NCBI RefSeq assembly: GCF_000143415.4
Contig: NW_003314275.1
Coordinates: 1,965,419-2,029,418, forward strand
Reading direction: 5' to 3'
DNA: 64,000 nucleotides
DNA from: Selaginella moellendorffii
Lineage: Eukaryota > Plantae > Lycopodiophyta
The notes below the pieces were generated by a model. It searched no databases. It saw only the letters and a list, made by a program, of their open reading frames with translations, and was not told the origin of the DNA. Shown one piece after another: positions 20,861 to 60,100 of the stretch. Position 1 is the stretch's first letter. Each line of letters opens with the position of its first letter. The position numbers and the translations under genes were made by a program.

Positions 20861-21590
20861 TCTTTTTGGTTTTCCCTAGAGTTTTCTTCTTTCTTCTAAA
20901 AATCTCCATGTATGTGAGTGAGTTGAGATACTACATTTTTGCGCCTCAGCATGGTTTCAATGAATTCACCACAGCTGAATCATCTGATTTTGCTAGCTAG
21001 CAAAAGGTGGAAATGTCAAGTGGCAAGCCCTCAGCTGAATGATGAGTTTAAGGGTTCATGGTAAAGGTAAATATTGTAAGTTTCTCATGCTTCAACACTG
21101 TAAACTACTATACCTGGTTGTCTCCAAGGCCCCAGGACTCAGTAAGACATGGGAACATGTCAAGAGCACCAAGAGCTGCAGGTCATGCCTGTTAGCAAAG
21201 ACTTGGCAGTGAGGCTTGGTTTGTCGGAGAAAGTATGAACACAGCATTAAAAGAGAAGAAACAAATACCTACTACTTTCTCAAGAGGCCAGTCTGAGTTT
21301 TCAACAATGAGAATGTTTTGCCGTTAAAAGAATATACCCCCACGATTTTATGTGTTAGAAGAAATATACTCCGATGGTCCTCCCAGGGATACGTATTACC
21401 GCAAACATCGCGACACATTGCGAATTTCCATATTCGACACATAGGGCCCGATTCAGCCACGTGTCGTATTTACAAGTATAAATTCACGAGTCCCATAATG
21501 GAGGAAGTATCACAGCATAGCTCTAGACATCTACCAAAGCTCACACAACGCCTTTTCTATCTTTCAATCTCCTGAGGCTTTTCTAGCAAG

Positions 21591-22345
21591 ATGGCACTCG
21601 CGGTAGGCAGTGGCATTGCAGCAATCCCTTCCTCGCTCTCAAAATCCTCCCTAGGAGCGGCCGCTCCCAAGTCTCGATCCAATCGCTCCTTGGCCTTCCT
21701 GCCAGTGAGAGCTTCGTCGGACAATGGCCGACGAACCCCCGGCGGAGGCGATGGGATCAGCAGCGTACTGGACCAGACCAAGAAGGAGATCACCCGAGAG
21801 GATGTGCTCAAGAACCAGGCCGAGAACGAGGCGGAGAAGAGGTCCGTGTTTGGAGCGGTGCCATCGTCCGGAGCAATGTGGCCGAGGCCGGAGATCGAGA
21901 GACGGCCAGAAACGGGCGATCGATCATTCGCGAGCTTGATGGCATTCGATGGCGCTGGCCCAGAGACGATCAACGGCAGACTGGTAAGTCCCTCCCTTCT
22001 CCAAAGTTCAGGATCCGTGGAGTCCGTTGTTCTAAGTTTATTTTTCCATTGATACAGGCAATGGTTGGAATCTTGTGGGCCTTTGCAGTGGAGAGAATGA
22101 CGGGACAAACGGTGGCCGAGCAGCTCTACACGCCAGGCAACTTCGGCTTGTTTAACTTCTTGGCGGTGGCACAGCTCTTTGCTTACGCGTCGCTGGTTCC
22201 CATGTTTAAGGGGGAGAGCCCCGATAGCCGATCTTTGGGCCCGTTTAGAGCCATGGCGGAGCGCTGGAATGGGCGGACTGCCATGCTTGGCTTCCTCGCT
22301 CTGGTGCTCACGGAATTCTTCACCAAGACCCCAGTTTTTCAGTGA
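21591..22345 (+). CDS. ELIP: Early light-induced protein, copy 2 (2 exons)
   Basis: Near-identical to copy 1. Ends in VFQ* because of a 6-nt deletion. Confidence 0.92.
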
Positions 22346-23709
22346 GTGACCTGAGAGTCTGTAAATTTTTGTTCATTAAATTTTTGTTAATATTCTTAAA
22401 TTTAGTTTTAGATCGTGATCTCCCTTTCCCCTTTAATCTGATTACTTTCGGATCCTTGCTAGAGCGCTCAAACTGCTGCATTATGATTTGCTTTGCGAGA
22501 AGATCAACCATGTTGACTGCTCGGCTGGCTGTTTTGGCAATCTGCTCTCAGTGGATTTCACCTTTTACGTACTCACACAACAGGAGGTCATGAGCTGCAC
22601 TAAAACCTTCTAGCATTCGGGCAATGCTCTCGATTTATCTGTACCATCACAGTACTGGGTGAGTAGCCAACTGCAAATCTTTGTTTTGTGCCGAATAGAT
22701 TATCGAACGGATTAAAATATGCCACGTTTACAGTAATGAAAAGTGGCAAAAAAACGGCGTCTGGCTAATCCAAAGCCTTTGCGAGCTATAGCCAGTTCAT
22801 TGGTTATTCGGGTGGAGATAAAATAATAAACGCACATGCTGTTATATTATGTTTGAGCAAATGTGATGGGATTTGAATGTCGAAGAAGATTACCTAGGGG
22901 GTTCTCTTCTTGTTTTCTCTTTGTTCTCCCTGGAGTTTCTTCTTTCTTCTAAGGATCATCACGTACGTGAGCGACTTGAGATCACAGGTACTACTTTTGC
23001 GCTCAGCATGGTTTCGATGAATTCACCGCCACCACCAGGCTCAATCGTCTGATTTGGCTAGCTAGCAAAAAGTGGAGATGTTAAGTGGCAAGCCGTATTT
23101 GGTTTTCAACTGAACGATAAGATGTTCATGGTAAAGGCAAATATTGATAAGTTTCTCATGCTTCAATGGTAAGGAATTCGGACAATTCACCAGCAAGAAA
23201 CAGCGAAACAACGACTGGAAGGAAGTAATCGGGAACAGTAAGAGATAGGATTCACTTGGTTGTCTCCAAGGCCCAGTAAGCCATGGGAACATGTCAAGAG
23301 CGCCAAGAGCTGCCGGTCAGCAAAGACTTGGCAGTGAGGCTTGGTTCGTCTGAAAAAGTATTAACATAGCATTATAAACAGGGGACAAGAAACAAATACC
23401 CGCTAACTTCTCAAGAGTTCTTGTAAACCGTTGCAAATCGCATATTTCAACAATGAGACTATAAACGAATATGCATACTTCGATGATCCTTCCCATGGAT
23501 ACGTACTACCGCAAACATCGCGACACATTGGCGATTTCTTTAATCGACACATAGCCCCTGGTTCTGCCACGTGTCGTATTTGCTAGTATAAATTCTCGAG
23601 TCCCGTAGTGGAGCAAGTATTACAGCGTAGCTCTAGACTTCTACCAAAGCTCACACAAATTCTTCCACGCTTTGTCTATCTTTCAATCTTCTGAGGCTTT
23701 TCTAGTAAG

Positions 23710-24466
23710 ATGGCACTCGCCATAGGCAGTGGCATTGCAGCAATCCCTTCCTCGCTCTCAAAATCCTCCCTAGGAGCGGCCGCTCCCAAGTCTCGATCCA
23801 ATCGCTCCTTGGCCTTCCTGCCAGTGAGAGCTTCGTCGGACAATGGCCGACGAACCCCTGGAGGAGGTGATGGGATCAGCAGCGTACTGGACCAGACCAA
23901 GAAGGAGATCACCCGCGAGGATGTGCTCAAGAACCAGGCCGAGAATGAGTCGGAGAAGAAGTCCGTGTTTGGAGCGGTGCCATCGTCCGGAGCATTGTGG
24001 CCTAGGCCTGAGATTGAGAGGCGGCCAGAGACGGGCGATCGATCATTTGCGAGCTTGATGGCATTCGATGGCGCTGGCCCAGAGACGATCAACGGCAGAC
24101 TGGTAAGTCCCTCCCTTCTCCAAAGTTCCTGGTTAGTCCCTTGTGCTAAGTTTTATTTTTCCATTGATACAGGCAATGGTTGGAATCTTGTGGGCCTTTG
24201 CAGTGGAGAGAATGACGGGACAAACGGTGGCCGAGCAGCTCTACACGCCAGGCAACTTCGGCTTGTTTAACTTCTTGGCGGTGGCACAGCTCTTTGCATA
24301 CGCGTCGCTGGTTCCCATGTTTAAGGGAGAGAGCCCCGATAGCCGATCCTTGGGCCCGTTTAGAGCCATGGCGGAGCGCTGGAATGGGCGGACTGCCATG
24401 CTTGGCTTCCTCGCTCTGGTGCTCACGGAATTCTTCACCAAGACCCCAGTTTTTCACATGATGTAA
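23710..24466 (+). CDS. ELIP: Early light-induced protein, copy 3 (2 exons)
   Basis: Near-identical to copies 1 and 2, with a slightly shorter intron. Confidence 0.92.
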
Positions 24467-26147: not shown

Positions 26148-27667
<1,520 letters not shown>

Positions 27668-38919: not shown

Positions 38920-41900
38920 TCAGTTCTTCTCTGGACAAGCAGCACGCAAGTCTTCCTGGACCACTTTGATACTCGGCCTCTCCGAGCGCTCCAAAATGCA
39001 ACTTAGCGCCAGAGCCAAAACATCGTCGATCCCCTGCGGTGGCTCTTGATCCCTGTCGTAGCCAACTAGTGCCTGATCGTAGCACTCCGGACCCCTGCCC
39101 TCCGAGACGAGCAGCTTCACCCAGTCGGTGAGGTCCACAGCTCCAGAGTTTCCAGAGATGATGTCTCCGGCACCTTTGCCCGTGACAATCTCCATCAGGA
39201 TCACACCGAAGGCGTATATGTCCGCCTTGAGAGTTGGCTTTGGCTTCCTGGCGTGTGCAAGCTCGGGAGCGCGGTATCCCAGCGCTCCCGCGTTGAGAAT
39301 CTGGTTGGCTGTTCCAGCGGGTGTCATGAGCCGGTGAATGCTGTAGTCGGACAGCCGCGCTACGAGAGAAGATCCATCCAGTAGGACGTTGCTAGCTTTC
39401 AAGTTGCCGTGAGGGAGCTTGTGCTTGGTGTGCAGATACGAAAGTCCGCGCGTAATATCGACTGCAATGCGCACTCGCTGTGACCATTCTAGTGGTGGAA
39501 ATCTTCGACCACTTCTTTCTGCGTAGAAGAAATGGATAGGTAAGGAAATGCGTAGAAAGGGAAAGGCGGAACTTTTACCTGTAAGTCGATCAGATAAACT
39601 TCCAAAGCTGAGGTAGTCCGATATGACGAGCTTCTCGTGTTCTCTCGGCCCCCAGTAATAGCCTCGGAGAGGAAGTATGTTTGGATGTTGAATGGAACCA
39701 AACTTTCTAGCTTCACGAGTGAACGCTGCTTTGTTCTTGGCGAGTCCTTCTCGCAGCCACTTGACTGCCAGCATGTGTCCATTTTCGAGCGTTGCCTTGT
39801 ACGAAGTACCATGGCTACTGCGACCGAGAACTTCAGCAGGCGCACTCGACAGCTCTTCCGGCGTGAAAACAATCGAACTGTCAAGTAGAAAGAGATCTCC
39901 AGCCAGCTTATCGGGAGAACGGACCTTCTGACTGGGAGCACGTTCGAGTGATGACGGACCTTCGTCGAGCAGCGTTGTTCTACTCTTGCTTCGCTTTCTT
40001 GTGAGCAAGCCTTCCTGTTTCTTCTTGGTGTCCCGTCCGTCACCTTGCTCCGGAGAGCCAGGGACGTTTCCTTGTTGAGGTAGAAGCTGCTCCCTCGATA
40101 AGCTCACTGAAGCACCAGCTTTAGCCGCAGATGGAGGCCCGAACTCCAACCGATGAGGACTTTTTACCACGTCACGTTCATCCGAAGAATTTTTGTCAGC
40201 TGCTTGCAATCTGGAGTAGACGAACAGAGCGATCGCAATGATGATGACTGTTGCTGCTACACACCCCCCAATCAAGCCGGCCTTCACTGCGGATGATAAT
40301 CCTTTGCCCCGCCTGGACCGCAAGGACGGGATTCCAGCCCCGCTGCTTCCAGGTACTACAAGTCCGGCATTGCCCGGGAAAAAAGACGACAGTGGGAATC
40401 TTGATAGCAAGTTTGCTGGTAAATGTCCCGACAAGTCGTTGTTTGTCAGGTTCAACGTCTGTAATGAAGATGGAAGCTGTGCTGGAATCCGGCCACGAAG
40501 ATGGTTAGACGAAAGATCCAAATTCTCCAAGTACCTCAACCGTGAGAGCTGACTGGGAATGCCTCCAGTGAAGTCGTTTCCTCCCAGGTTAAGGACGACT
40601 AGTCCCGATAGAGAAGCAATTTCTTGGGGGATGGAACCATTGAGACTGTTGAAAGATAAGTCAAGGACTTGTAACGGGGAGAACAAAACCGCTGGGGGAG
40701 TGGAAGAGATGGAGGTGGGCGACAAGAGCTCACCGGGGATGGCGGAAGAGGAAAGGAAGCTCACGACTGGAATCCCACCCACGAGATTATTGTTTGCGAC
40801 TCTGAAAATGGTTAGAGACGGGGAGTGAAAAAAATCACCAGGGATTTCACCGTCGAGATTGTTGGAGCTGAGGTCTAGCGCGGTCAGTTTGCGGAGGGAT
40901 GCGAGAGTACCGGGAATAGGACCAGACAAGGCGTTGTGAGATACGTTGAGGTACATGAGTCGGAGGAGGTGTGCTGTTTCGTTGGAGAGAACGCCGTCAA
41001 AAGAGTTGCCGCTGAGGTCGAGAACCTGTAAGCTGTCCCTCCAGTCTTTCATCACGTCCAAGTTCCCGGAAAAATGATTGTTGCTGAAGTCTACTATGGC
41101 GCAGCTTCCCAGTCTTATCGGCAAAGTACCCGAGAAGTTATTCGACGCTAGCCTTAAGATCGATAGACTGGTGGCTGCCACCATTCCAATAGTACCTGCA
41201 AGAAAGAGAAGAGTGAGAAATATAAGCGACAGAAGAGAAGCAAACAACGTAAACACTTACCGGAAAGATTGTTGAAGCTGATGTCAAGCTCCTCCAGCAC
41301 AGATTCCGTGGCGAGAAGCGCCGGAGGTACATATCCCACGAAGGAATTGTTCTGGAGTTTCAAGACACGTAGCGAGAAGACAAACGAAAACGACGGAAGC
41401 TTCCCCGACAACAAGTTGCTGCTCACGTCCAGGATTTGCAGCTCGCTCGCAAACAAGCTCGCCGCGTTCTCGGGAGCCAGCTCGCCAGTAAACCTGTTGG
41501 AGCTGAGATTTACCGAGCTGATGCCTTGCGGGAAAACAAATGGAGCACCCTGCTGCCACGGGAGCAACCCCGAGAGCTCGTTGCAGCTCATGTCGATCAC
41601 TTCCATGCGGCTGAGACCCATGAGCACGGGATCCACCTCTCCGGAGAGCCTGTTCTGGCGAAGATCCAGCCGGTGCAAGCTTTCCAAGCTGCTCATCTCT
41701 CTCGGGATCACACCGCTAAACGCGTTCCACGAGAGGTTGAGCGAGACCAGCTGCCGCAACGAAGTGATCGATGGAGGGATGCCACCCGAGAGCGAATTGC
41801 CGCTTAAGTCGAGATCTCCGAGCCGGATCATGCTCGCAAACATATCCGGGACCGGCCCCTCGAGCTTGTTTGACGAGAGAGAAAAGTTTACCACGCTGCG

Positions 41901-42332
41901 CAGGCCGGCAAAGGAGCTCGGGATGGATCCCACGAACTGGTTGGCCGACAGATCCAAAAACTGGAGAGCATGGAGCTCGCCCAGATCCTCTGGAAGCTTT
42001 CCACCCAGAGAATTGTTGCCGAGAAGCAGCGACGTGAGCCTGGACAGCCTGCCGATCGTTCCAGGAGAGATTTCCCCCTGGAGCTGGAGATCGCCCAGTG
42101 CCAAACCAGTGACGCTGCCATTGGAGCACACTACCCCGTGCCACTGCGAGGGGCAGCCCGACGGATCCACCCTGTTGGCAACCCAGCTGCTCCTGATCAG
42201 CCCCCCTGGATCGCCAGTGACCCCATCCCGAAATTTCAGCAGCGCCGAGGCATCGTCCGCCAAGGAATCCGCCCGCCAGGAGCTCGACAAGACGAGAATT
42301 CCCACGACGAGCACCAGCATTATCCTTCCCAT
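38920..42332 (-). CDS. LRR-III receptor-like pseudokinase (GHR1/SIRK1 clade), 3 exons
   Basis: Signal peptide, CPSQWHGVVC cap, many LxxLDLSxNxLSGxIP repeats and a TM helix. SPDKLAGDL..EELSSAPAEVLGRSSHGTSYKA clade signature. HGNLK and SDYS replace HRD and DFG. Confidence 0.92.
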
Positions 42333-43123
42333 CGCCCCGAGCTGCTGCCTTCCAGCCAGATTTTCACCTCATCTTCTCCCAGCTCCAGAAATCATGAGCC
42401 CACAACACTGGAGAAAATGGGGCCCCTGGGCGTGCGCCGGGGCCCCATCCGCTTGAATCTAGTGCCCGCTCCTCATTGCCGATCGAAGAACACACCCCCA
42501 GCTCGGGAATTTCGGCGGATTCTAAGCCGAATCGCGACCTACATTGCATCCTAGATCCAAGCCAGCTCCACAATCCATACCGGGGAGGAAGAACAGCGGC
42601 ACCTCCTCGCGCGCCACGGCTCCAGCCCTAACCCTCCCAGAGCTTCGAAGCCGGGAATATTCGTTGCCACTGTTGGAATATGCTCTGAAAGCGACCAATC
42701 CCTTTGGAGGTTGGAGCGCATTTCTTTCTTAACAGCTAGATGGCAACTGAGGATGTTGATGTGCTTATTCTTTTTACGATGCTATTCTCGCGAGTTCATT
42801 CAATGCATCGCATGATAGATGGAACGATAGAAATTTGTTTAGATTGGTCGTGGTAGTTTTCTTTGGAAGAATTTGACGATCACGATGTTCTTCCTGTTCT
42901 TCACTTGGAGGCGTGATGGCACGGTGCAAATTATATCACGCAGAAGTAGAGGTCGATCTATATATAACTTTCGTTTAGATTTCTCTTCTCGTATGTGCTG
43001 TCACTGGAGTGAGTGATGAGTAATTGGTTCCTGTAACGTTTTGAGAGATCTCTCTCCAAAATGCTTTCGCTCGCCAGTAAGTTGGTAAAATGTGCTGAGA
43101 GTTTGGAAGAACCTTGCCTTAGA

Positions 43124-45436
43124 TCACCAGATCGGCTGCTGGTGCTGGGGCGGAGGCAGCCACGATTCCATCTCTTCCTTGTGTATCATCCTGTTGTAGG
43201 TTTGAGTCTCTGCGTTCCAGCTGCAAATCGGGCACTCGTCACTCGGGGCACCCTGGAGGATCTGGCACAAACATCCCAAAGTTACTCGAGAGTTTCGAGG
43301 GAAAAAGTCAAGAGATAATAAACGAACCCTGAGAACACACTGCTCGCAAAACGCATGGTTGCATTCCAGGCGAATGGGATCCACGACGAGACCTGTAAAG
43401 TGAAAAACAAAAAGTGAAACGTTGGGACCGGTAATAAAGCGGAGTAACTTTTTACACTTACGAAAGCAGATGCAGCAGTTGCCAGAAGCGTCGTACTGTC
43501 CATTCGCAATCAACGATGAATTCGGAGGCAATCCCAAACTGTTTCGAAGCTGAGATTCCAGGAAACGTTTCTTCATCACTTCTGGATCGCTGTCAAAAGA
43601 ACCATCTGATCTGAGTAAACGTTCACAGTACATATAAATGCTTGTACCAGTCACGGGTATAATCGAGAGGAAAGTCCGGTGAGAGCGGTTTAGTCATGTA
43701 TCCCCCTCCTAAACACACAAGAACAAAAATATTACGAACTAACACCAGAAAGAAGCTGCCAATCAAACCTCGAGGGAACACTTTGAGCTCTCGCAGTGGT
43801 ACCGCCAAGTCCGGATCATTAAAGAACTGCTTCGTAGTATTCTCGGGTGAAAGTAGATCGGAAACGGCTTGCGCCTCCAATTTGGCACGAGTTTTGGCTC
43901 GGACTTCGGCCATTAGCATCTCAAGCTTCTTCATAGCCTTTTTTTCTTCCTCGAGTCTCCGATCCGCATCACTGCCTATAATGCTCGGAGCTGGATCACA
44001 GAGTGCACGGTCACATATCAGTCCTTGAGCCGAAGAAAACAAATACTTAACGTTTAGCTTCGTCCTTGGCTGGATGAAGCAGTTTCTCCATCTGCTTCCT
44101 GTGAAGTCAAGTTTCATTAGCTTCGAGCTGGAGAAGAGACAATTTCAACTGGAGAATTTACGTACTTGTTCATAGGCTTGGATTTCTCGCGGTATGGTTT
44201 GACGAGCACCCGCGCACCACAGACATGGTGAGGATTTCCTTCGGCCAGAATCATCCTCACCGTCTCAGCGTACGTGAACGTCACAAACCCAAACATTCGC
44301 TTGTGCTGGGTTGGAATTCTCACGTCTTCCACGGGACCGTAAGCTCTGCACAGTAAAGTTTCGTATCGCTCCTCTTGTAGCGAAGGAATTAAACACAACG
44401 TACCGGAAGTGTGTCGCGACGTCCTCCTCGGAGAAATTGCTATCGCATGGAAACGTGAGATAGATTTGTCTGGAGCAAGGGCTTGGATCGTTACATTCGT
44501 CCAGATCCACCTTGTGAGCGCTGTATTTTGGAACATCCTCCGCGAGCATGAGAGCGTGCTGCCGATGGGGCCTGGGAAAGGAAAGAAAGAAGTGATAGAG
44601 ACTGACGCTCGCAAAGGAGGAAGAAGAAAATGCCCCAAGCAAACAAGAAATTGCGAAGAATCGAGGACTGGATGAAAACTAAGCTACGATTAGAGAAAGA
44701 AGCATACCTAGCAACAATGGCGCTAACAAGAAATGCGAAGAATCGAGAAGGAATGGATGAAAACTGTGAAAACTAAGCTACGATCGAAGAAAGAAGCATA
44801 CCTCTCGACGACGGTGACGCTCTGGAACTTGCTAAGAAGCTTTGTGAGGGTGTAGCCCGGCTTCGCGTGGCGCTGGCTCTCGGAGACATAGCCATCGGCT
44901 TCCAGCCAGCGGCCATACTTCTCGAAGTAAATCTGCGGCAGCGAGGAGACGGAGATGGGAACGCCTTTGCGCGAGCGCAAGAGCTCCTGGAGCTGGAATT
45001 CCAGGCGCTCCATCGACAAGAACTGATCTTTCGGCGGGGAATCCGACTGGAGCAGCGCGGAATCGTGGATGAAGCGGCAGCTGCTCCCGTTCTTGCAAAA
45101 TCCCTTGGCAAAATACATGCATGGCTTGGGGGGATCCTCGTCGGGCGCCGGAACCGCGATCTTGGCTGGAGCTTTGCTTCTGAAACCATTGGCCTTGGTA
45201 GCCGATGATCCACCGAACTCGCCGATGCCACCGATCGTTGCCAGATGATTCTCGTTGCAGAAGAGCTCCTTCTTGGCCTTGGCGACGGTCGATTTGAGCT
45301 CCGGATCCGTGCTAAAGGCGAGGCTAAACATATCCGAGTTCTTGAGCAGCAGATACCCCATCACTCGATTCACATTCTCCGCATCGATCGCCTTGACCCT
45401 GGCGAACACGATCTGAGCCGCCTCGCACGAATCCAT
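43124..45436 (-). CDS. CCCH zinc finger, OST-HTH/LOTUS and RRM protein (AtC3H18/46/55-like) with an apparent C-terminal C3HC4 RING
   Basis: [19 protein letters not shown]; [30 protein letters not shown]; RQIYLTFP...RMFGFVTF. Downstream exons give [23 protein letters not shown]...CPIC. The join to the RING exons is inferred. Confidence 0.78.
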
Positions 45437-45866
45437 CGCTCGATCGCTGGAGGAGAGGAGCACGCGCCGCTGCTACTGCGATGGCGCCGTCGATCAATCC
45501 GCTCCTGGAGCTCGAGCCTCGAAATATTTCGATCGATCGATCGAAATAATCACCCCTCCTTCCTATCACTCCGCAAGAACAAGAACGATCGCTCTGACAA
45601 AGCTGCGCGTACAGACATAATGAAACGAGGTCGTGCGTAGCGTGTTAACAAAACCACCGCTACCTCTAGATTTGGCGGGACTTTTAAAACTACTAAAATA
45701 ACCTAATATTCAAATAAATAATAGGAAAGAAGAATGCAAACAGCGTGCCTACAAAACTGCTAACTAGAAGATCCACAACAAAAAAGAAAACTCCGACAAA
45801 ACGAGGACGTCCAAATAGTTGTACGGTGAAATAACTCGGTGGTACGGCATTAGAACTTCTCCCTCT

Positions 45867-47521
<1,655 letters not shown>

Positions 47522-53676: not shown

Positions 53677-54088
53677 GCCAAAACCTTTGTTATCAATTTC
53701 ACTTAAAAGTCATTCCTCTGAAGTAAGCTAACATCAGGTTTTCTTGCTATTTCTTTTACAAAAGCGTCCTTCTCCGGGATGAAACAGCAATCAGTGCGTT
53801 CTTCTGTCCATGGTTACGAACAAGAGACAAGTAAGCAATCAATCTCTAGAAGGTTCTATATTCCTTGCTCAGGAATTTCCTTTTCAAAATCATAGGTACC
53901 GTTCAACTTCTGAAAAACTGAAAGGCCGGTGTCATGTACATCACAAAGCCCTCCACGATTCCATGGCCATGCACGACTGGCCAGCAACCACTTGTTCCAA
54001 ATTAGAAGCTGCCACGGCAGCACCAGGGCTACGATTGGGGATTTTAAGCTTCGAAGCTTGAAAGTTTTCGCGGAGTTTGGATCACTTC

Positions 54089-56476
54089 ATGGCCAACGTG
54101 AGCAGTATCGTAGATGGTTTGCGGCGGAGCGAACGCAAACAAATTCCCTTCTATCTGCTCTACGATCACAGGGGCTCGGAGCTCTACAAGAAGATCACGG
54201 AGCTGAAGAGCTACTACCCTTTCGAGGCTGAGAAGGCTTTGTTCCAGAAGCATGCACTCGACATTGCTGGACAGATTGCCCCCGGCAGCCTGATTGTCGA
54301 ATTGGGATGTGGTGTTGCTGACAAGACCGCTCTTCTCCTCAATGCGATCCTCTCCAAGCATCAGAGGTTTGAGTTTTCTTTGTTTTCTTTGTAACGTTCC
54401 TATCTTTTTCTTCTTGCTGTTCTTGATCGTCCTTGGCCTTTGTGCTTGCTTCTCCAGGTGCCATTACGTTGGTATCGATGTCTCCCGGGCTGCGCTGGAC
54501 GAGGCCGAGACTTCAATGGAAAAGAGCGATGATCTCGAGCTGGAGCTTGTTCATGCCGATTACTTGGAAGGGCTGGAGATGGTTCGAAAGAAGTATCCAG
54601 ACAGACTCATTTGCATCCTCTGGCTTGGAAGTAGCATCGGGAACCTCTCGCAATCCGAAAGCGGCGACTTCGTTGGTCGAATGCTCAAGATAGTTGGGTT
54701 CCGGTGCCAGTTTTTTCTCTGCGTCGGTGAGTACTTCTCTCTCTTCTCTAATTTGATCACGGTACGTTTCCTCCATTTGTCCAGACCTGTGGAAAGATGA
54801 GGCCACTCTGCGAGCAGCTTACGAGGATAAGCAAGGCGTTACTGGAAGTTTTATAAAAAATGGCATGAAGCACGGGCTGGAGCTTCTCGGGCATTCCGTA
54901 TCTGACGACGAGGTTCACGAAGATTGGGAATATGAGGTACAGATCAATAGCATGTCCCGGCAAGTTGAGATGTACGTTCGTTTTCTCCGATCACTCTGCC
55001 TAGTCGATCACGACATCGAAATAAGGTTCGCAACTCGACACTCGCTAAGTTGACATGTGTCGTCGGTTCTTTTTCCATATTTGTTTTCTTCCTGGCAGTA
55101 AAAACGAGAGAGTCCTCGTCGAGATCTCGAGAAAGTTTACAGTAGAGGACGTATTACAGCTCGTCAGTCAGCTCGGCTTTGTTTGCCACGCCAGGTGGAC
55201 GTCGAAAAGCTATGGCTGCTTTATGATGCTTTCTTGTGAGGAGGCCGCAATCAGGTGTTGGACGGACACAGACAAGCTTTTCAAAGGCGTCGGTGATTGG
55301 ATGTCCCAACCGATCCCATATCGTCACCCATATTGTTTCTACTAGTAAGTGGCGAGTCGTGAATGATTTGTGGTTGACAAATACTTTTGGTGTTGCAGTG
55401 GCCACGTAACAGCTTTCACCATTATCAAGCTGCTCAAGGACGAGTCGGACACGGGTCTCAACCGTGTCTTCTCGCGCGGAATAGATCCTTTCATGTTGGA
55501 CCCCAGCCGCTGTCATAAGCATCCAGAAACTCCAGCCCAGTGGCCAGACAAGGAGACGCTCAGAAAATATACCATGGATGGCCGAGCCCGAGTCCTGGAG
55601 TACCTGAGAGACGGCAACCCGGACATGCGACGCCTCTGCCTCGTCCTCGAGCACGAGCGAATGCATCAGGAAACCATGGCCTACATGCTAGCCCAGGAAC
55701 GCAAGCTCCAGTTCGAAGCTCCTGTTCTCACTTCTCCTCACGAGCTCGGGCTCGCGGACGGGAACGGGACTTCAAAGCCGGCAGCTACCGACGTCTTCTT
55801 CACCAGAGGCACCGTTGTGCTGGGAAGTGATCCAATTCCCAGTGTCTTCCGCTTCGACAACGAGGAGCCGTCTTACAAGACTCAAGTGGAGCACGACTTC
55901 TGCATCAGTTCCATGCCAGTTTCGATCGGGGAGTTTATGGTCTTCGTCCAGGACGGGTGCTACAACAAGAGAGAACTCTGGCAGGAAGACGATTTTACGT
56001 TCCTGGAGAGGAGTGGTCACAAGTTTCCTGCAACGTGGTCCTGCTCCCAGGGGGACTATTACGTACACTTTCCAGACAAGACGCTCTCCTGGATCGAAGC
56101 TCGTCACCAGCCTGTTTACGTGAGCCTGATGGAGGCCGAGGCTTTTTCCAAGTGGATGTGTTCCAGAGTGATGACCGAGGTTGAGTATCAGCGAGTTTTG
56201 GACGAGGAGTTTGCGAGGGAGGAGCAGAGGGTGAAGCATTTGAAGGATGGAGGATGGGAGTGGACGAGTTCGCTACTAGCACCGTTTGAAGGGTTCACGA
56301 GCATGGAAGAGTACCCGGAGTATTCGACGGACTTCTTTGACGGCTTGCACTACGTCCTCAAGGGGTCATCTCCAGCAACACATGTCTCACTGCTGCGGGA
56401 TTCCTTCCGAAATTTTTATCAGCGGCAGTACCCGTATGCTTTTGCCAAATTTCGGCTGTGCAAATCGTCACAGTGA
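54089..56476 (+). CDS. EGT1: Egt1-type bifunctional ergothioneine biosynthesis protein (EgtD histidine methyltransferase, DinB/FGE-like sulfoxide synthase), 5 exons
   Basis: EgtD motifs LYDHRGSELY..IT..YYP, VELGCG, WLGSSIGN and EISRKF. Sulfoxide-synthase motifs RHPYCFYYGH, FSRGIDP...CHKH..WP, EHERMHQET, GGWEWTSS, YSTDFFDG and FRNFYQ. Four short GT-AG introns restore the frame. Confidence 0.88.
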
Positions 56477-57165
56477 TTCCTCCTATAAAATTACTCCTAT
56501 AAAATAAAGGAAGAAGTTTTCCTGTTTATATTTTATTTTTTATGCAAAAAACAAAATAAAATAAAATATTTTAGAATCACGAAACTTTAAAAACTTTTAC
56601 AATATTATTTTAACTTTTACATTGAAAACCTTTATTAGATGTTAGATAAATAACAAAATGTTAACTTCCTTTTCTCGTAATTGTATAAGTAACATTGTGA
56701 ATGCATAAAATATGAAAATAGAATATAGAAATAAAACTTTAACCTATATATAAAAGTGAGTGGTACGGATTAAAACCAATCCAACTGCTCTACACTAATA
56801 TTAATATATAGCATCATAGCTGTACAATGTAAAATAAAAAAATGTAACTTTTAATATAATTTAATAGCAATATATTTGTGATAGTTTTTTTCAGCCAAGC
56901 TACCCGACTATCCAATTCACTGCTTTGTCAACAAAATGAACAGGTCTTGGCAAGCAAGGTCACCACCATAAACGTAGTGTGTTTCGTGTCCCTTGCCATA
57001 ACTCAAATCCAAATAGCACCTCAAGAGAAACTCCGAACTCCATCAATCTTCCAGCCAGACGAGCTTCGGCACCCTGCAGTGTGAACTTGTTGGGGATTGA
57101 CGTAATCATCGTGGCTGAGCCTCTTCAAGTCTTCCCAGTCCCGGAGGAACTTCCACAAGCCTTTG

Positions 57166-60100
57166 TCACACTTTTAAACTTCGTTACCAACCAAAAAAAT
57201 GAGGACTCTATGAACAAACCGCTATGAACAAAAAACAAACGACGCAACGAACCGCCACTCAAACCCACCTTTTCGACAGCTTCCCAACACCAGCGCCATT
57301 TTGGATCAGAATCCCCGACTGTCGAATAGAGCTCGGCTTGGAACCTGCCAACTCCAAAGACACGAAAACGATTACCAATGCAGCTAAGTACAAACATGGA
57401 AAAGCTTACCTCGCTTCGCAAGTTCCTCCGAAGCCACCGCCGCCAGCGGAATATCCGACAATCTCCGTAATCCAGCCATTGACACTGCGCTGGGGAGCTT
57501 CTTCTCACTTCGTGGAGGCCGAGGTATTTGAGACAATGAGCTACAAAAAAAGAGAAAGCAGTGTTGCCAAAGATCAAAACAAGCTACTGTAAGGCTCACC
57601 GTAGCTCGTTGGCATTGAGACCTGGCCTTGAGCTGTTTGTTGCTGCTCTCATGGTCTGAGATTGGTCGCTGGCCACCGTGAAAGAATCCTGGGACGCCTC
57701 TCCTTCAGACAAGTCCTCGTAGTTATTCTCCATAGCTGGCCAGTCCCCCGGTACGTTGTTCTCAAAAACTACGAAGGCGTCGCCGTCCACGGACCTGCGA
57801 GGCGTTTCCGGCAAAGTAACATCCGGTATATCTTCGGCAGCAGTTTCATCTTGACTCGGAGCACGACCAGCCTGTCAAAAGTAGATTAAGGATGGCAGCC
57901 ACTCCCAGCTTCAATTACCTCCATACTGCGCAATTCGACAGATCTCCTACTCCGGGCATCAATGGAGCGAGTGGACTGAGACACTCTCAGTTTCTGTTTT
58001 TCCACCTCCATGCTGCTACGAAGGACCCTCGAAGCTTGCAAGCGCTCTATTTCTGCATCCTTTTTGGCCAGTATCTCTTTCAAGGACATTATCTGAAAAT
58101 ATCAACCGTGAACCAAACTCTATTCATCTGGTTTGCCAAGAATGTACCTGCTCCTTGTATTCTCGAATTCCGCTCGCTTCTCTATTCGAACGTGCGGCAC
58201 CAAGCTCAACACTTGACACCCTCTCTGCAAACTTCAATGTACTTATTGTCTCCCCGTATGAATCATTGTCCGGGTTTATATGGACAAACATCAGAGCTTT
58301 TGCTTGACCACCTGTTCACGTCGGATATACATATAGATATCAGCAACCATGAGAACCTTACCCAGAGAATGCTGAAGGAGTTGTGTTAGCTTGCTATTTC
58401 GGTAAGGGATGTGCGTCTGCTTTTGAGCCAAAGCTGCAATAACATCCCCTAAAGCCGATAAAGACTTGTTGATATGTTGCGCCTCCTTCAATCTGTCTCC
58501 AGTCGCCTCTGACTTCTCCACTCGCTCACTTCCCGCGAGATCAACTAAGTGGAGACAGCCACGAAGAATGCAGCCCTTTGCAAGATCTGTGCCTTGCACA
58601 TGCACAGTCAGCACACTGCATAGAAAGAACCACGGGAAAGGTTATATTTCATTACAAAAACGAATAAAAACACTGACCTGTGAGATCGACTGCTGCGTTC
58701 ATTAAGAGCTGTAGCTCCTACAGCACGGTTCCTCTGTCCGACAGCCATGATTTCTAGCACATCTGAGCTATTTGCAACGGGGATCATAACAGCATCAGGT
58801 ACGTGGACGCCATTAAGTGACGAAGAGCTTCTTATGCCAAGTCTCTTGCTCACACCATCAGCAGCCAGGAGATCTCTCACTTGTTCATTGTAAATCTCAA
58901 TCATTTGCACCCCAACTTCGTAGGCAAAAGCGTCCCTCCTGCTTTGACATAATTGAAAAAGATCGTTTAGTGCTCGGTAGTTAACCCCCCAATCTTGTTT
59001 TGCAGTTGAACTTGGCCCTGTCTGCATCAATAGACGTTAATACACAAATCCTAACGGAGCTCACAGCTTACCATAGTATATGTTTTTCCAGAACCAGTCT
59101 GTCCATACGCAAAAATACAGACGTTGAAACCATCAAGCACCGATCGAATCAAAGGCTGCGCATCCAGAAAAACCTCGTCTGCATGCACGTGTCATTGTGA
59201 CTATTGGAGCAAAATATAGAACGTACCTTGTGGAGCTTGAGGGCCATAGACCTTGTTAAAATTAAACATCTTATAAGAGTCTTTTCCCTTTGTCGAATTT
59301 GCGACCATGATTTCCCCGTTTTGACCAACAAAATCAACGCAAGTCCCTTGATCTTTCTGACCAACAAGAAAAGGTCTAACTCGGCAGTAAACACGAATAT
59401 TTCCTGCAGGTAAATGGTATTAGAAGAGAACTAATGGAGCACTGTATACCCTTCAAGTCCTGTACTTCATTATACAGCTTGCGATTCTCTGCAAGAACGT
59501 CGTGGTACGCTTGAGCGGCTTCTGTTAGTCCTGTTAACTCATTTTCTGAAAGGGAACTAATGTCAGAAACAAGAAAGATTTTAAAAACTCATTACCAAGT
59601 CTAATAAGCTGATCTTGCCAACATTTCTGCATTTCGAGCGTTCCTGTTCTGATAAGTCCAGAGGTATGCTTCAGATTCTGAAAACAGACGTAATCGGAAG
59701 ATACAATCACCAGCTATTAATTTGACGTACCTGAAGTGCATTGGACTGGAAAGAGATTATTTGTTTGTACCGATCTTCGCGATTCTTGAACTCATTTCGT
59801 TCAAGAGACACACTGGCTTCAAAACTCCGCATCTGACTGAAAGAATCTTCAAGTTTCGCATCCATTTCCGAAAGCTTTCGCTTATATTCCTCCATTAACT
59901 TCTCATTTTCAATCTCCATTTCGTACTTCTTCCTCTGATCAGCTTTCATGACTTGAAGTTCATTTGTAAGAATCTCGATTGTGGTCTGCTTTTGATCTCT
60001 GTCCAGTACCAGCTTCTCGGTGTCACTTTCGTGTATCCGTTTCTCTTCCTCAAGTCTTTTGTTCTCCATCTGCGGAGCAAATTTGAGACGGTACGTAAAA

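Follow-up and report, generated by a model that had tools for sequence, protein, structure and literature searches.

The analysed stretch (the window) comprised 64,000 nt of the genome of Selaginella moellendorffii and contained a gene, EGT1, at 54089-56476 on the forward strand. Five exons join into an open frame of 2112 nt (703 codons and the stop TGA) and are separated by introns 1-4 of 91, 58, 73 and 54 nt, with GT-AG ends in all four. The joined model showed 0 differences from SELMODRAFT_441187 (P0175), an NCBI hypothetical protein of S. moellendorffii, which establishes the lycophyte host that the sequence-only reading had thought probable. The transcript, exons and catalytic motifs were positioned as follows.

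53913..56526, +, transcript, minimum extent (5' UTR, CDS and short 3' UTR), from spliced contigs X4 and X11
54089..54366, +, exon 1, start ATG, N-terminal part of the EgtD-type methyltransferase with Y25, Y33, Y42 and the SAM motif ELGCG (E71-G75); PF10017 8e-25
54458..54726, +, exon 2, methyltransferase core with LGSSIGN (S152, N155); PF10017 1.5e-13
54785..55025, +, exon 3, methyltransferase with AYEDKQGVT (Y195, T202) and M245; PF10017 5.9e-11
55099..55344, +, exon 4, end of the methyltransferase (E271, S273), short linker and start of the DinB-like part up to FY(Y)
55399..56476, +, exon 5, sulfoxide synthase domain (remaining DinB-like part and FGE-like part) and stop TGA; EgtB 4x8b 5.4e-25
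55403..55405, +, codon of H347 (FYYGH), first Fe ligand, invariant in 72/72 aligned sulfoxide synthases
55475..55546, +, RGIDPFMLDPSRCHKHPETPAQWP segment, RGIDP...CHKHP...WP, residues 371-394, common to red-alga-like and some bacterial EgtB
55652..55666, +, codons of H430-E-R-M-H434 (HERMH), second and third Fe ligands, aligned to HEHQH of M. thermoresistibile EgtB and invariant in the 72
56312..56323, +, codons of Y650-P-E-Y653 of EEYPEYSTDFF, aligned to the MIYQRYS stretch of EgtB

Public RNA data were compared with the locus. Two contigs covered the whole spliced mRNA (X4, 53913-56461; X11, 54037-56526), and a further contig (X3) extended to 53900, the edge of the stretch compared. In contigs from four runs belonging to four studies, gaps of exactly 91, 58, 73 and 54 nt, each with GT..AG ends, fell at the junctions of the model, and single spliced transcripts ran across both domains. 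Because such spliced forms come only from RNA, the locus is transcribed and its introns are removed as the model predicts. Between 60 and 79% of the words sampled from 53900-56700 were present in 20 public runs (one organism, six studies), which is about the exonic share. Transcript contigs of run X1 carried a second set of single-base variants at 53942-54960, which fits an expressed second EGT1 allele or haplotype.

Neighbouring genes were read from the larger ORFs of the window.

26152-27598 and 45871-47293, -, two eEF1A copies
38920-42332, -, LRR receptor-like kinase with a plant LRRNT_2 cap, many LRRs and a kinase domain, as two long ORFs with probably an intron between them
about 43100-45463, -, AtC3H46-type PABC/CCCH/RRM zinc-finger protein
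58608-59030, -, kinesin motor fragment
within the window, an acyltransferase ORF

The surroundings of EGT1 are ordinary plant gene space. The plant neighbours and host-like introns described from the sequence alone are seen in the LRR kinase, the AtC3H46-type, eEF1A and kinesin genes and in the short GT-AG introns. The scan of the larger ORFs of the window showed no PLP C-S lyase (Egt2/EGT2). The eEF1A copies lie ∼19.7 kb apart with DNA 97-98% identical over at least 1.4 kb, which looks like a recent segmental duplication. A tandem duplication was also present at 21381-22336 and 23491-24451 (∼2.1 kb spacing, 87-99% identity).

The whole protein was searched against Pfam and matched Methyltransf_33 (PF10017, the histidine-specific SAM methyltransferase domain IPR019257) at residues 6-300 (4.4e-73, profile positions 4-294 of 304); exons 1-4 taken singly matched successive parts of the same profile. 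DinB_2 matched residues 315-444 at 21 bits, under the cutoff of 24.8, and an FGE-sulfatase match started from residue 476 (6.4e-18). The order within one polypeptide is methyltransferase, DinB-like, FGE-sulfatase-like. The intact five-exon gene joining an EgtD-type methyltransferase to a sulfoxide synthase, as first proposed from the sequence, is thus borne out by the 703-aa frame, the Pfam order and the spliced contigs. Gene structure and expression are confirmed: the locus is a real, intact and expressed S. moellendorffii gene for a two-domain enzyme that is predicted to start ergothioneine synthesis. A pseudogene reading was rejected.

The nearest solved structure in the PDB for the full-length protein was mycobacterial EgtD (2.4e-27). 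For the synthase part it was M. thermoresistibile EgtB (4x8b, 5.4e-25), followed by EgtB-IV, OvsA, OvoA and SenA. PDB searches with exons 2, 3 and 4 singly gave no useful match, the pieces being too short. The methyltransferase was aligned to M. tuberculosis EgtD (7scf, in which chain numbers equal native numbers), and the residues contacting L-histidine were taken from PMC8593015.

M. tuberculosis EgtD Y39, Selaginella EGT1 Y25, identical
M. tuberculosis EgtD F47, Selaginella EGT1 Y33, conservative change
M. tuberculosis EgtD Y56, Selaginella EGT1 Y42, identical
M. tuberculosis EgtD T163, Selaginella EGT1 S152, conservative change
M. tuberculosis EgtD N166, Selaginella EGT1 N155, identical
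M. tuberculosis EgtD Y206, Selaginella EGT1 Y195, identical
M. tuberculosis EgtD T213, Selaginella EGT1 T202, identical
M. tuberculosis EgtD E282, Selaginella EGT1 E271, identical
M. tuberculosis EgtD S284, Selaginella EGT1 S273, identical

The glycine-rich SAM motif is ELGCG. In the synthase domain the three-His iron site (H347, H430 and H434) was unchanged across the 72 aligned homologues, so that the retention of the Fe-binding histidines noted in FYYGH and HERMH holds; the FYYGH motif itself is interrupted by intron 4. The motif Y-x-x-Y-S-x-D-F-F-D-G-x-H was conserved across the same 72 homologues, with its two Tyr in nearly all rows. In the alignment, Y650 and Y653 stand opposite the two tyrosines of EgtB MIYQRYS, one of which should be MthEgtB Tyr377, a residue with a catalytic role (PMC10903977). 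The segment RGIDP...CH.H..WP had been taken as fungal Egt1-like. It is present, but red-alga-like standalone enzymes and the EgtB proteins of Methylomirabilota, Planctomycetota and Dormibacterota have it too, and so it does not mark the gene as fungal. Green-lineage proteins carry S-RGIDP...CHxHP versus E-RGIDP...CHxHS in fungi.

NCBIfam searches returned the egtD, SenA, EasF, EgtB and OvoA models, all under the bacterial equivalog cutoffs. The EgtB equivalog TIGR03440 scored 167.8 bits against a cutoff of 360 (match 22-412 of 413), SenA NF041186 188.2 bits against 420, and OvoA TIGR04344 139 bits against 400, with the domain order of EGT1 reversed relative to OvoA; the methyltransferase was likewise under the bacterial TIGR03438 equivalog cutoff. 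With EgtB, SenA and OvoA all scoring below cutoff, the sequence models alone leave the regiochemistry and the donor (Cys, gamma-Glu-Cys or selenium) unfixed.

Bacterial EgtD (M. smegmatis and M. tuberculosis; 4pim, 7scf) and EgtB (4x8b) share both folds and the catalytic residues with Selaginella EGT1. The bacterial enzymes are encoded by two separate, usually adjacent genes, whereas EGT1 is one fused protein, and mycobacterial EgtB takes gamma-Glu-Cys (PMC10903977). OvoA (5-histidylcysteine sulfoxide synthase, 8khq) and SenA/OvsA have a homologous sulfoxide/selenoxide synthase domain. In OvoA, however, the synthase is N-terminal and acts at histidine C5, whereas Selaginella EGT1 has the opposite order and an EgtD-type methyltransferase. 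Fungal Egt1 (S. pombe SPBC1604.01, N. crassa Egt1 and early-diverging fungi) resembles EGT1 in the order of PF10017 followed by DinB/FGE, in the Fe ligands and in the Tyr motif. Overall identity to the fungal proteins is only about 26-29%, and the 703 aa of the Selaginella protein, in which the interdomain linker is very short, compare with 758-931 aa in ten sampled fungal-clade homologues. The motifs differ as well, with FYYGH, S-RGIDP...HP and GGWEWT in green-lineage proteins and FYLGH, E-RGIDP...HS and GNGWEWT in fungi.

Fused homologues at 40-53% identity were found in mosses (Ceratodon, Sphagnum), liverworts (Marchantia, Riccia, Calypogeia), ferns (Adiantum), gymnosperms (Cryptomeria, Taxus), zygnematophytes (Closterium, Spirogloea, Mesotaenium), Chara and trebouxiophytes. 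A tree of the synthase domain (SX) was computed in IQ-TREE under LG+C20+F+G4 from 72 rows and 419 columns, and a second tree, also under LG+C20, was obtained for the methyltransferase domain (MT). Both trees are unrooted, leave out Dikarya Egt1 and an OvoA outgroup, and contain several rows with deviant composition. The green lineage formed a clade at 100/100 in both trees, with the streptophytes at 100/92 in the synthase tree. Fungi formed a separate clade at 100/100 (SX) and 99/88 (MT); in the synthase tree it included chytrids, Blastocladiomycota, Mortierellomycota and Hyaloraphidium. In the synthase tree a branch at 98/94 divided the green lineage, a further fused MT-SX group and the fungi from the red-alga-like, bacterial and reversed-order proteins. 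The methyltransferase tree was congruent and gave the same split at 96/92. In these unrooted trees, with Dikarya absent, both EGT1 domains thus lie on the fungal Egt1 side and not with bacterial EgtB/EgtD, and the Egt1-type assignment made from the sequence stands on both domains. Within the green clade the methyltransferase tree tracked plant phylogeny (chlorophytes first, then zygnematophytes, bryophytes and vascular plants in that order) and placed Selaginella, Adiantum and Cryptomeria together at 100/83.

The trees argue that plant EGT1 truly belongs to the Egt1-type fusion family, in which it is a sister lineage of fungal Egt1 that is old and has been inherited vertically. The label 'fungal-type' first given to the gene can accordingly be kept for the architecture and the deep family; it fails as a statement of lineage, the gene lying in a separate green-lineage clade.

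Two other origins were weighed against descent as an old sister lineage. The locus could be fungal or bacterial contamination of the assembly, or could have been acquired by recent horizontal transfer from a fungus to Selaginella. The methyltransferase-synthase architecture is classically known from fungi, and plant metabolism was long believed to be without ergothioneine (PMC13358676), both of which would suit such an origin. It is nevertheless extremely improbable: the same 64-kb window holds the LRR receptor kinase, the AtC3H46-type gene, the eEF1A genes and the kinesin, EGT1 has four short GT-AG introns, and its spliced transcripts occur in same-organism runs of four studies. Moreover, the Selaginella protein falls among streptophytes, apart from the fungal clade, and the highest fungal identity seen was ∼29%. 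A green clade at 100/100, within which the methyltransferase tree tracks the plants and which is not nested in fungi, argues against contamination or recent transfer.

Alternatively, a standalone EgtB of red-alga-like or bacterial type might have joined an EgtD in a plant fusion separate from that of fungi, so that the plant protein would be Egt1-like by convergence only. A FastTree analysis of 187 synthase domains put the green clade beside standalone enzymes, one named relative of which comes from the red alga Chondrus crispus; had this position held, the plant and fungal fusions would have been separate events. The green S-RGIDP...CHxHP segment also resembles red-alga-like and bacterial proteins and not the fungal E-RGIDP...CHxHS, and fusion would be easy given that bacterial egtD and egtB are usually adjacent and that reversed-order fusions exist. 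The mixture-model maximum-likelihood tree, however, holds the green lineage, the fungi and another fused group on one side of its 98/94 branch, and the methyltransferase tree agrees (96/92). An AU test, for which the red-alga-like group was defined only after viewing a tree, rejected a clade of green and red-alga-like proteins (delta lnL 27.4, p 0.0046). Independent fusion is therefore regarded as quite unlikely, and plant EGT1 as an old sister of fungal Egt1 is the reading preferred here. A wider proposal is offered tentatively, at somewhat less than even odds. Fungi, all of the green lineage and one or more additional eukaryotic groups would share a single, very old eukaryotic Egt1-type fusion, which would have passed vertically as far as gymnosperms and been lost in angiosperms, with red algae having a standalone bacterial-like EgtB. 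On this view the plant enzymes (FYYGH, S-RGIDP...HP) could prefer another thiol or selenium donor than fungal Egt1 does.

Humans and animals aside, synthesis of the diet-derived antioxidant ergothioneine was for a long time credited to fungi and some bacteria alone. With a probability of about 0.88, the locus is the native EGT1 of S. moellendorffii (SELMODRAFT_441187), a two-domain enzyme that would form hercynine and then hercynylcysteine sulfoxide, from which an EGT2 encoded elsewhere would yield ergothioneine; the reactions, the Cys donor and the end product are predictions. By homology, L-histidine would be methylated three times on its alpha-amino group by the N-terminal EgtD-type domain, with SAM as methyl donor, to form hercynine. 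In the C-terminal non-heme-iron domain, which combines a three-His site in a DinB-like part with an FGE-like part, an O2-dependent reaction would then attach cysteine at C2 of hercynine and so produce hercynylcysteine sulfoxide. Release of ergothioneine would fall to EGT2, a PLP C-S lyase whose gene lies elsewhere in the genome. Cysteine as the thiol donor of the Selaginella enzyme is presumed by analogy with the fungal pathway (PMC10903977), and ergothioneine would be the end product in Selaginella.

The enzyme could also be active with a main product other than ergothioneine, by stopping at hercynine, by making a selenoneine-type analogue or by using gamma-Glu-Cys. The SenA model slightly outscored the EgtB model, all under cutoff, and S. 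pombe egt1/egt2 can support selenoneine synthesis (PMC10903977). Thuja callus, in which both genes are present, gave no detectable ergothioneine (PMC13358676). Such an outcome is unlikely, since the synthase is fused to a hercynine-forming domain and lies on the Egt1 side of the tree, and the only plants and algae in which ergothioneine was detected have both EGT1 and EGT2 (PMC13358676). Synthesis of ergothioneine through hercynine and its cysteine sulfoxide remains the preferred assignment for EGT1.

The possibility raised from the sequence, that homologues had already been reported, proved correct. EGT1 and EGT2 were described in streptophyte algae, bryophytes, lycophytes, ferns and gymnosperms by Kock et al. 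2026 (Plant Biol 28:1343, PMC13358676; April 2026), together with the lack of EGT1 in angiosperms and measurements of ergothioneine in sterile cultures of several EGT1/EGT2-bearing species other than Selaginella. Dataset S1 of that paper (PMC13358676) lists Smoe_440291 as EGT1 and Smoe_232064 as EGT2 of S. moellendorffii. No other paper on the subject came up in an additional search of the literature library consulted. Smoe_440291 shares species, architecture and exon junctions with the gene in the window and is roughly 98% identical to it, with 9 differing positions in the first ∼400 residues printed in Dataset S1; the window copy, SELMODRAFT_441187, is absent from that listing. Because Smoe_440291 differs at 9 positions with the same exon junctions, SELMODRAFT_441187 is judged from the sequences to be most likely its allelic or haplotype partner, from the second haplotype of the assembly.

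EGT1 in Selaginella is thus already known, and ergothioneine synthesis in non-flowering plants is published. With the finding in print for this species too, the locus adds little that is new. An expressed, native lycophyte EGT1 fits the 2026 revision, in which non-flowering plants make ergothioneine and angiosperms have lost the gene. Added here are the RNA-verified coordinates of the Selaginella copy not yet listed, an examination of the two EGT1 active sites residue by residue, and congruent trees of the two domains with the plant gene as an old sister of fungal Egt1.

Other arrangements of the two domains were seen among the homologues collected. A fused MT-SX clade of proteins from run assemblies (P0031, P0037, P0039, P0055 and P0099; 750-850 aa) was the nearest outgroup of the green clade in the synthase tree (99/96). 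Red-alga-like standalone synthases of ∼450 aa were found in Chondrus crispus L086 (HG001854.1, 8001-9356) and in L001 and L003; no EgtD-type domain lay near these three within the flanks fetched. A bacterial origin of the standalone sister group was considered and rejected: the scan of bacterial genomes gave identities of at most 42%, and the contexts of P0027 and P0021 looked eukaryotic, with no methyltransferase near.

On two green-alga-like metagenome contigs (L084 6001-8591 and L085 6001-8811) the methyltransferase and the synthase were adjacent ORFs, 300-430 nt apart, with E2F, Tom37 and GH77/CBM20 as neighbours. Each ORF pair may be either one intron-bearing gene or a truly split EGT1. 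The standalone methyltransferases P0349 and P0350 (41-42% identity) were rejected as bacterial EgtD, each being the first ORF of a green-alga-like metagenome contig with a synthase ORF immediately 3'. Reversed-order fusions (P0213, P0045, P0052, P0053, P0061, P0079 and P0090), with the synthase first and the EgtD-type methyltransferase last, formed their own clade in both trees. One of them, P0213 (EukProt, 1208 aa), carries an aminotransferase (PF00155) between synthase and methyltransferase and may be a three-step fusion.
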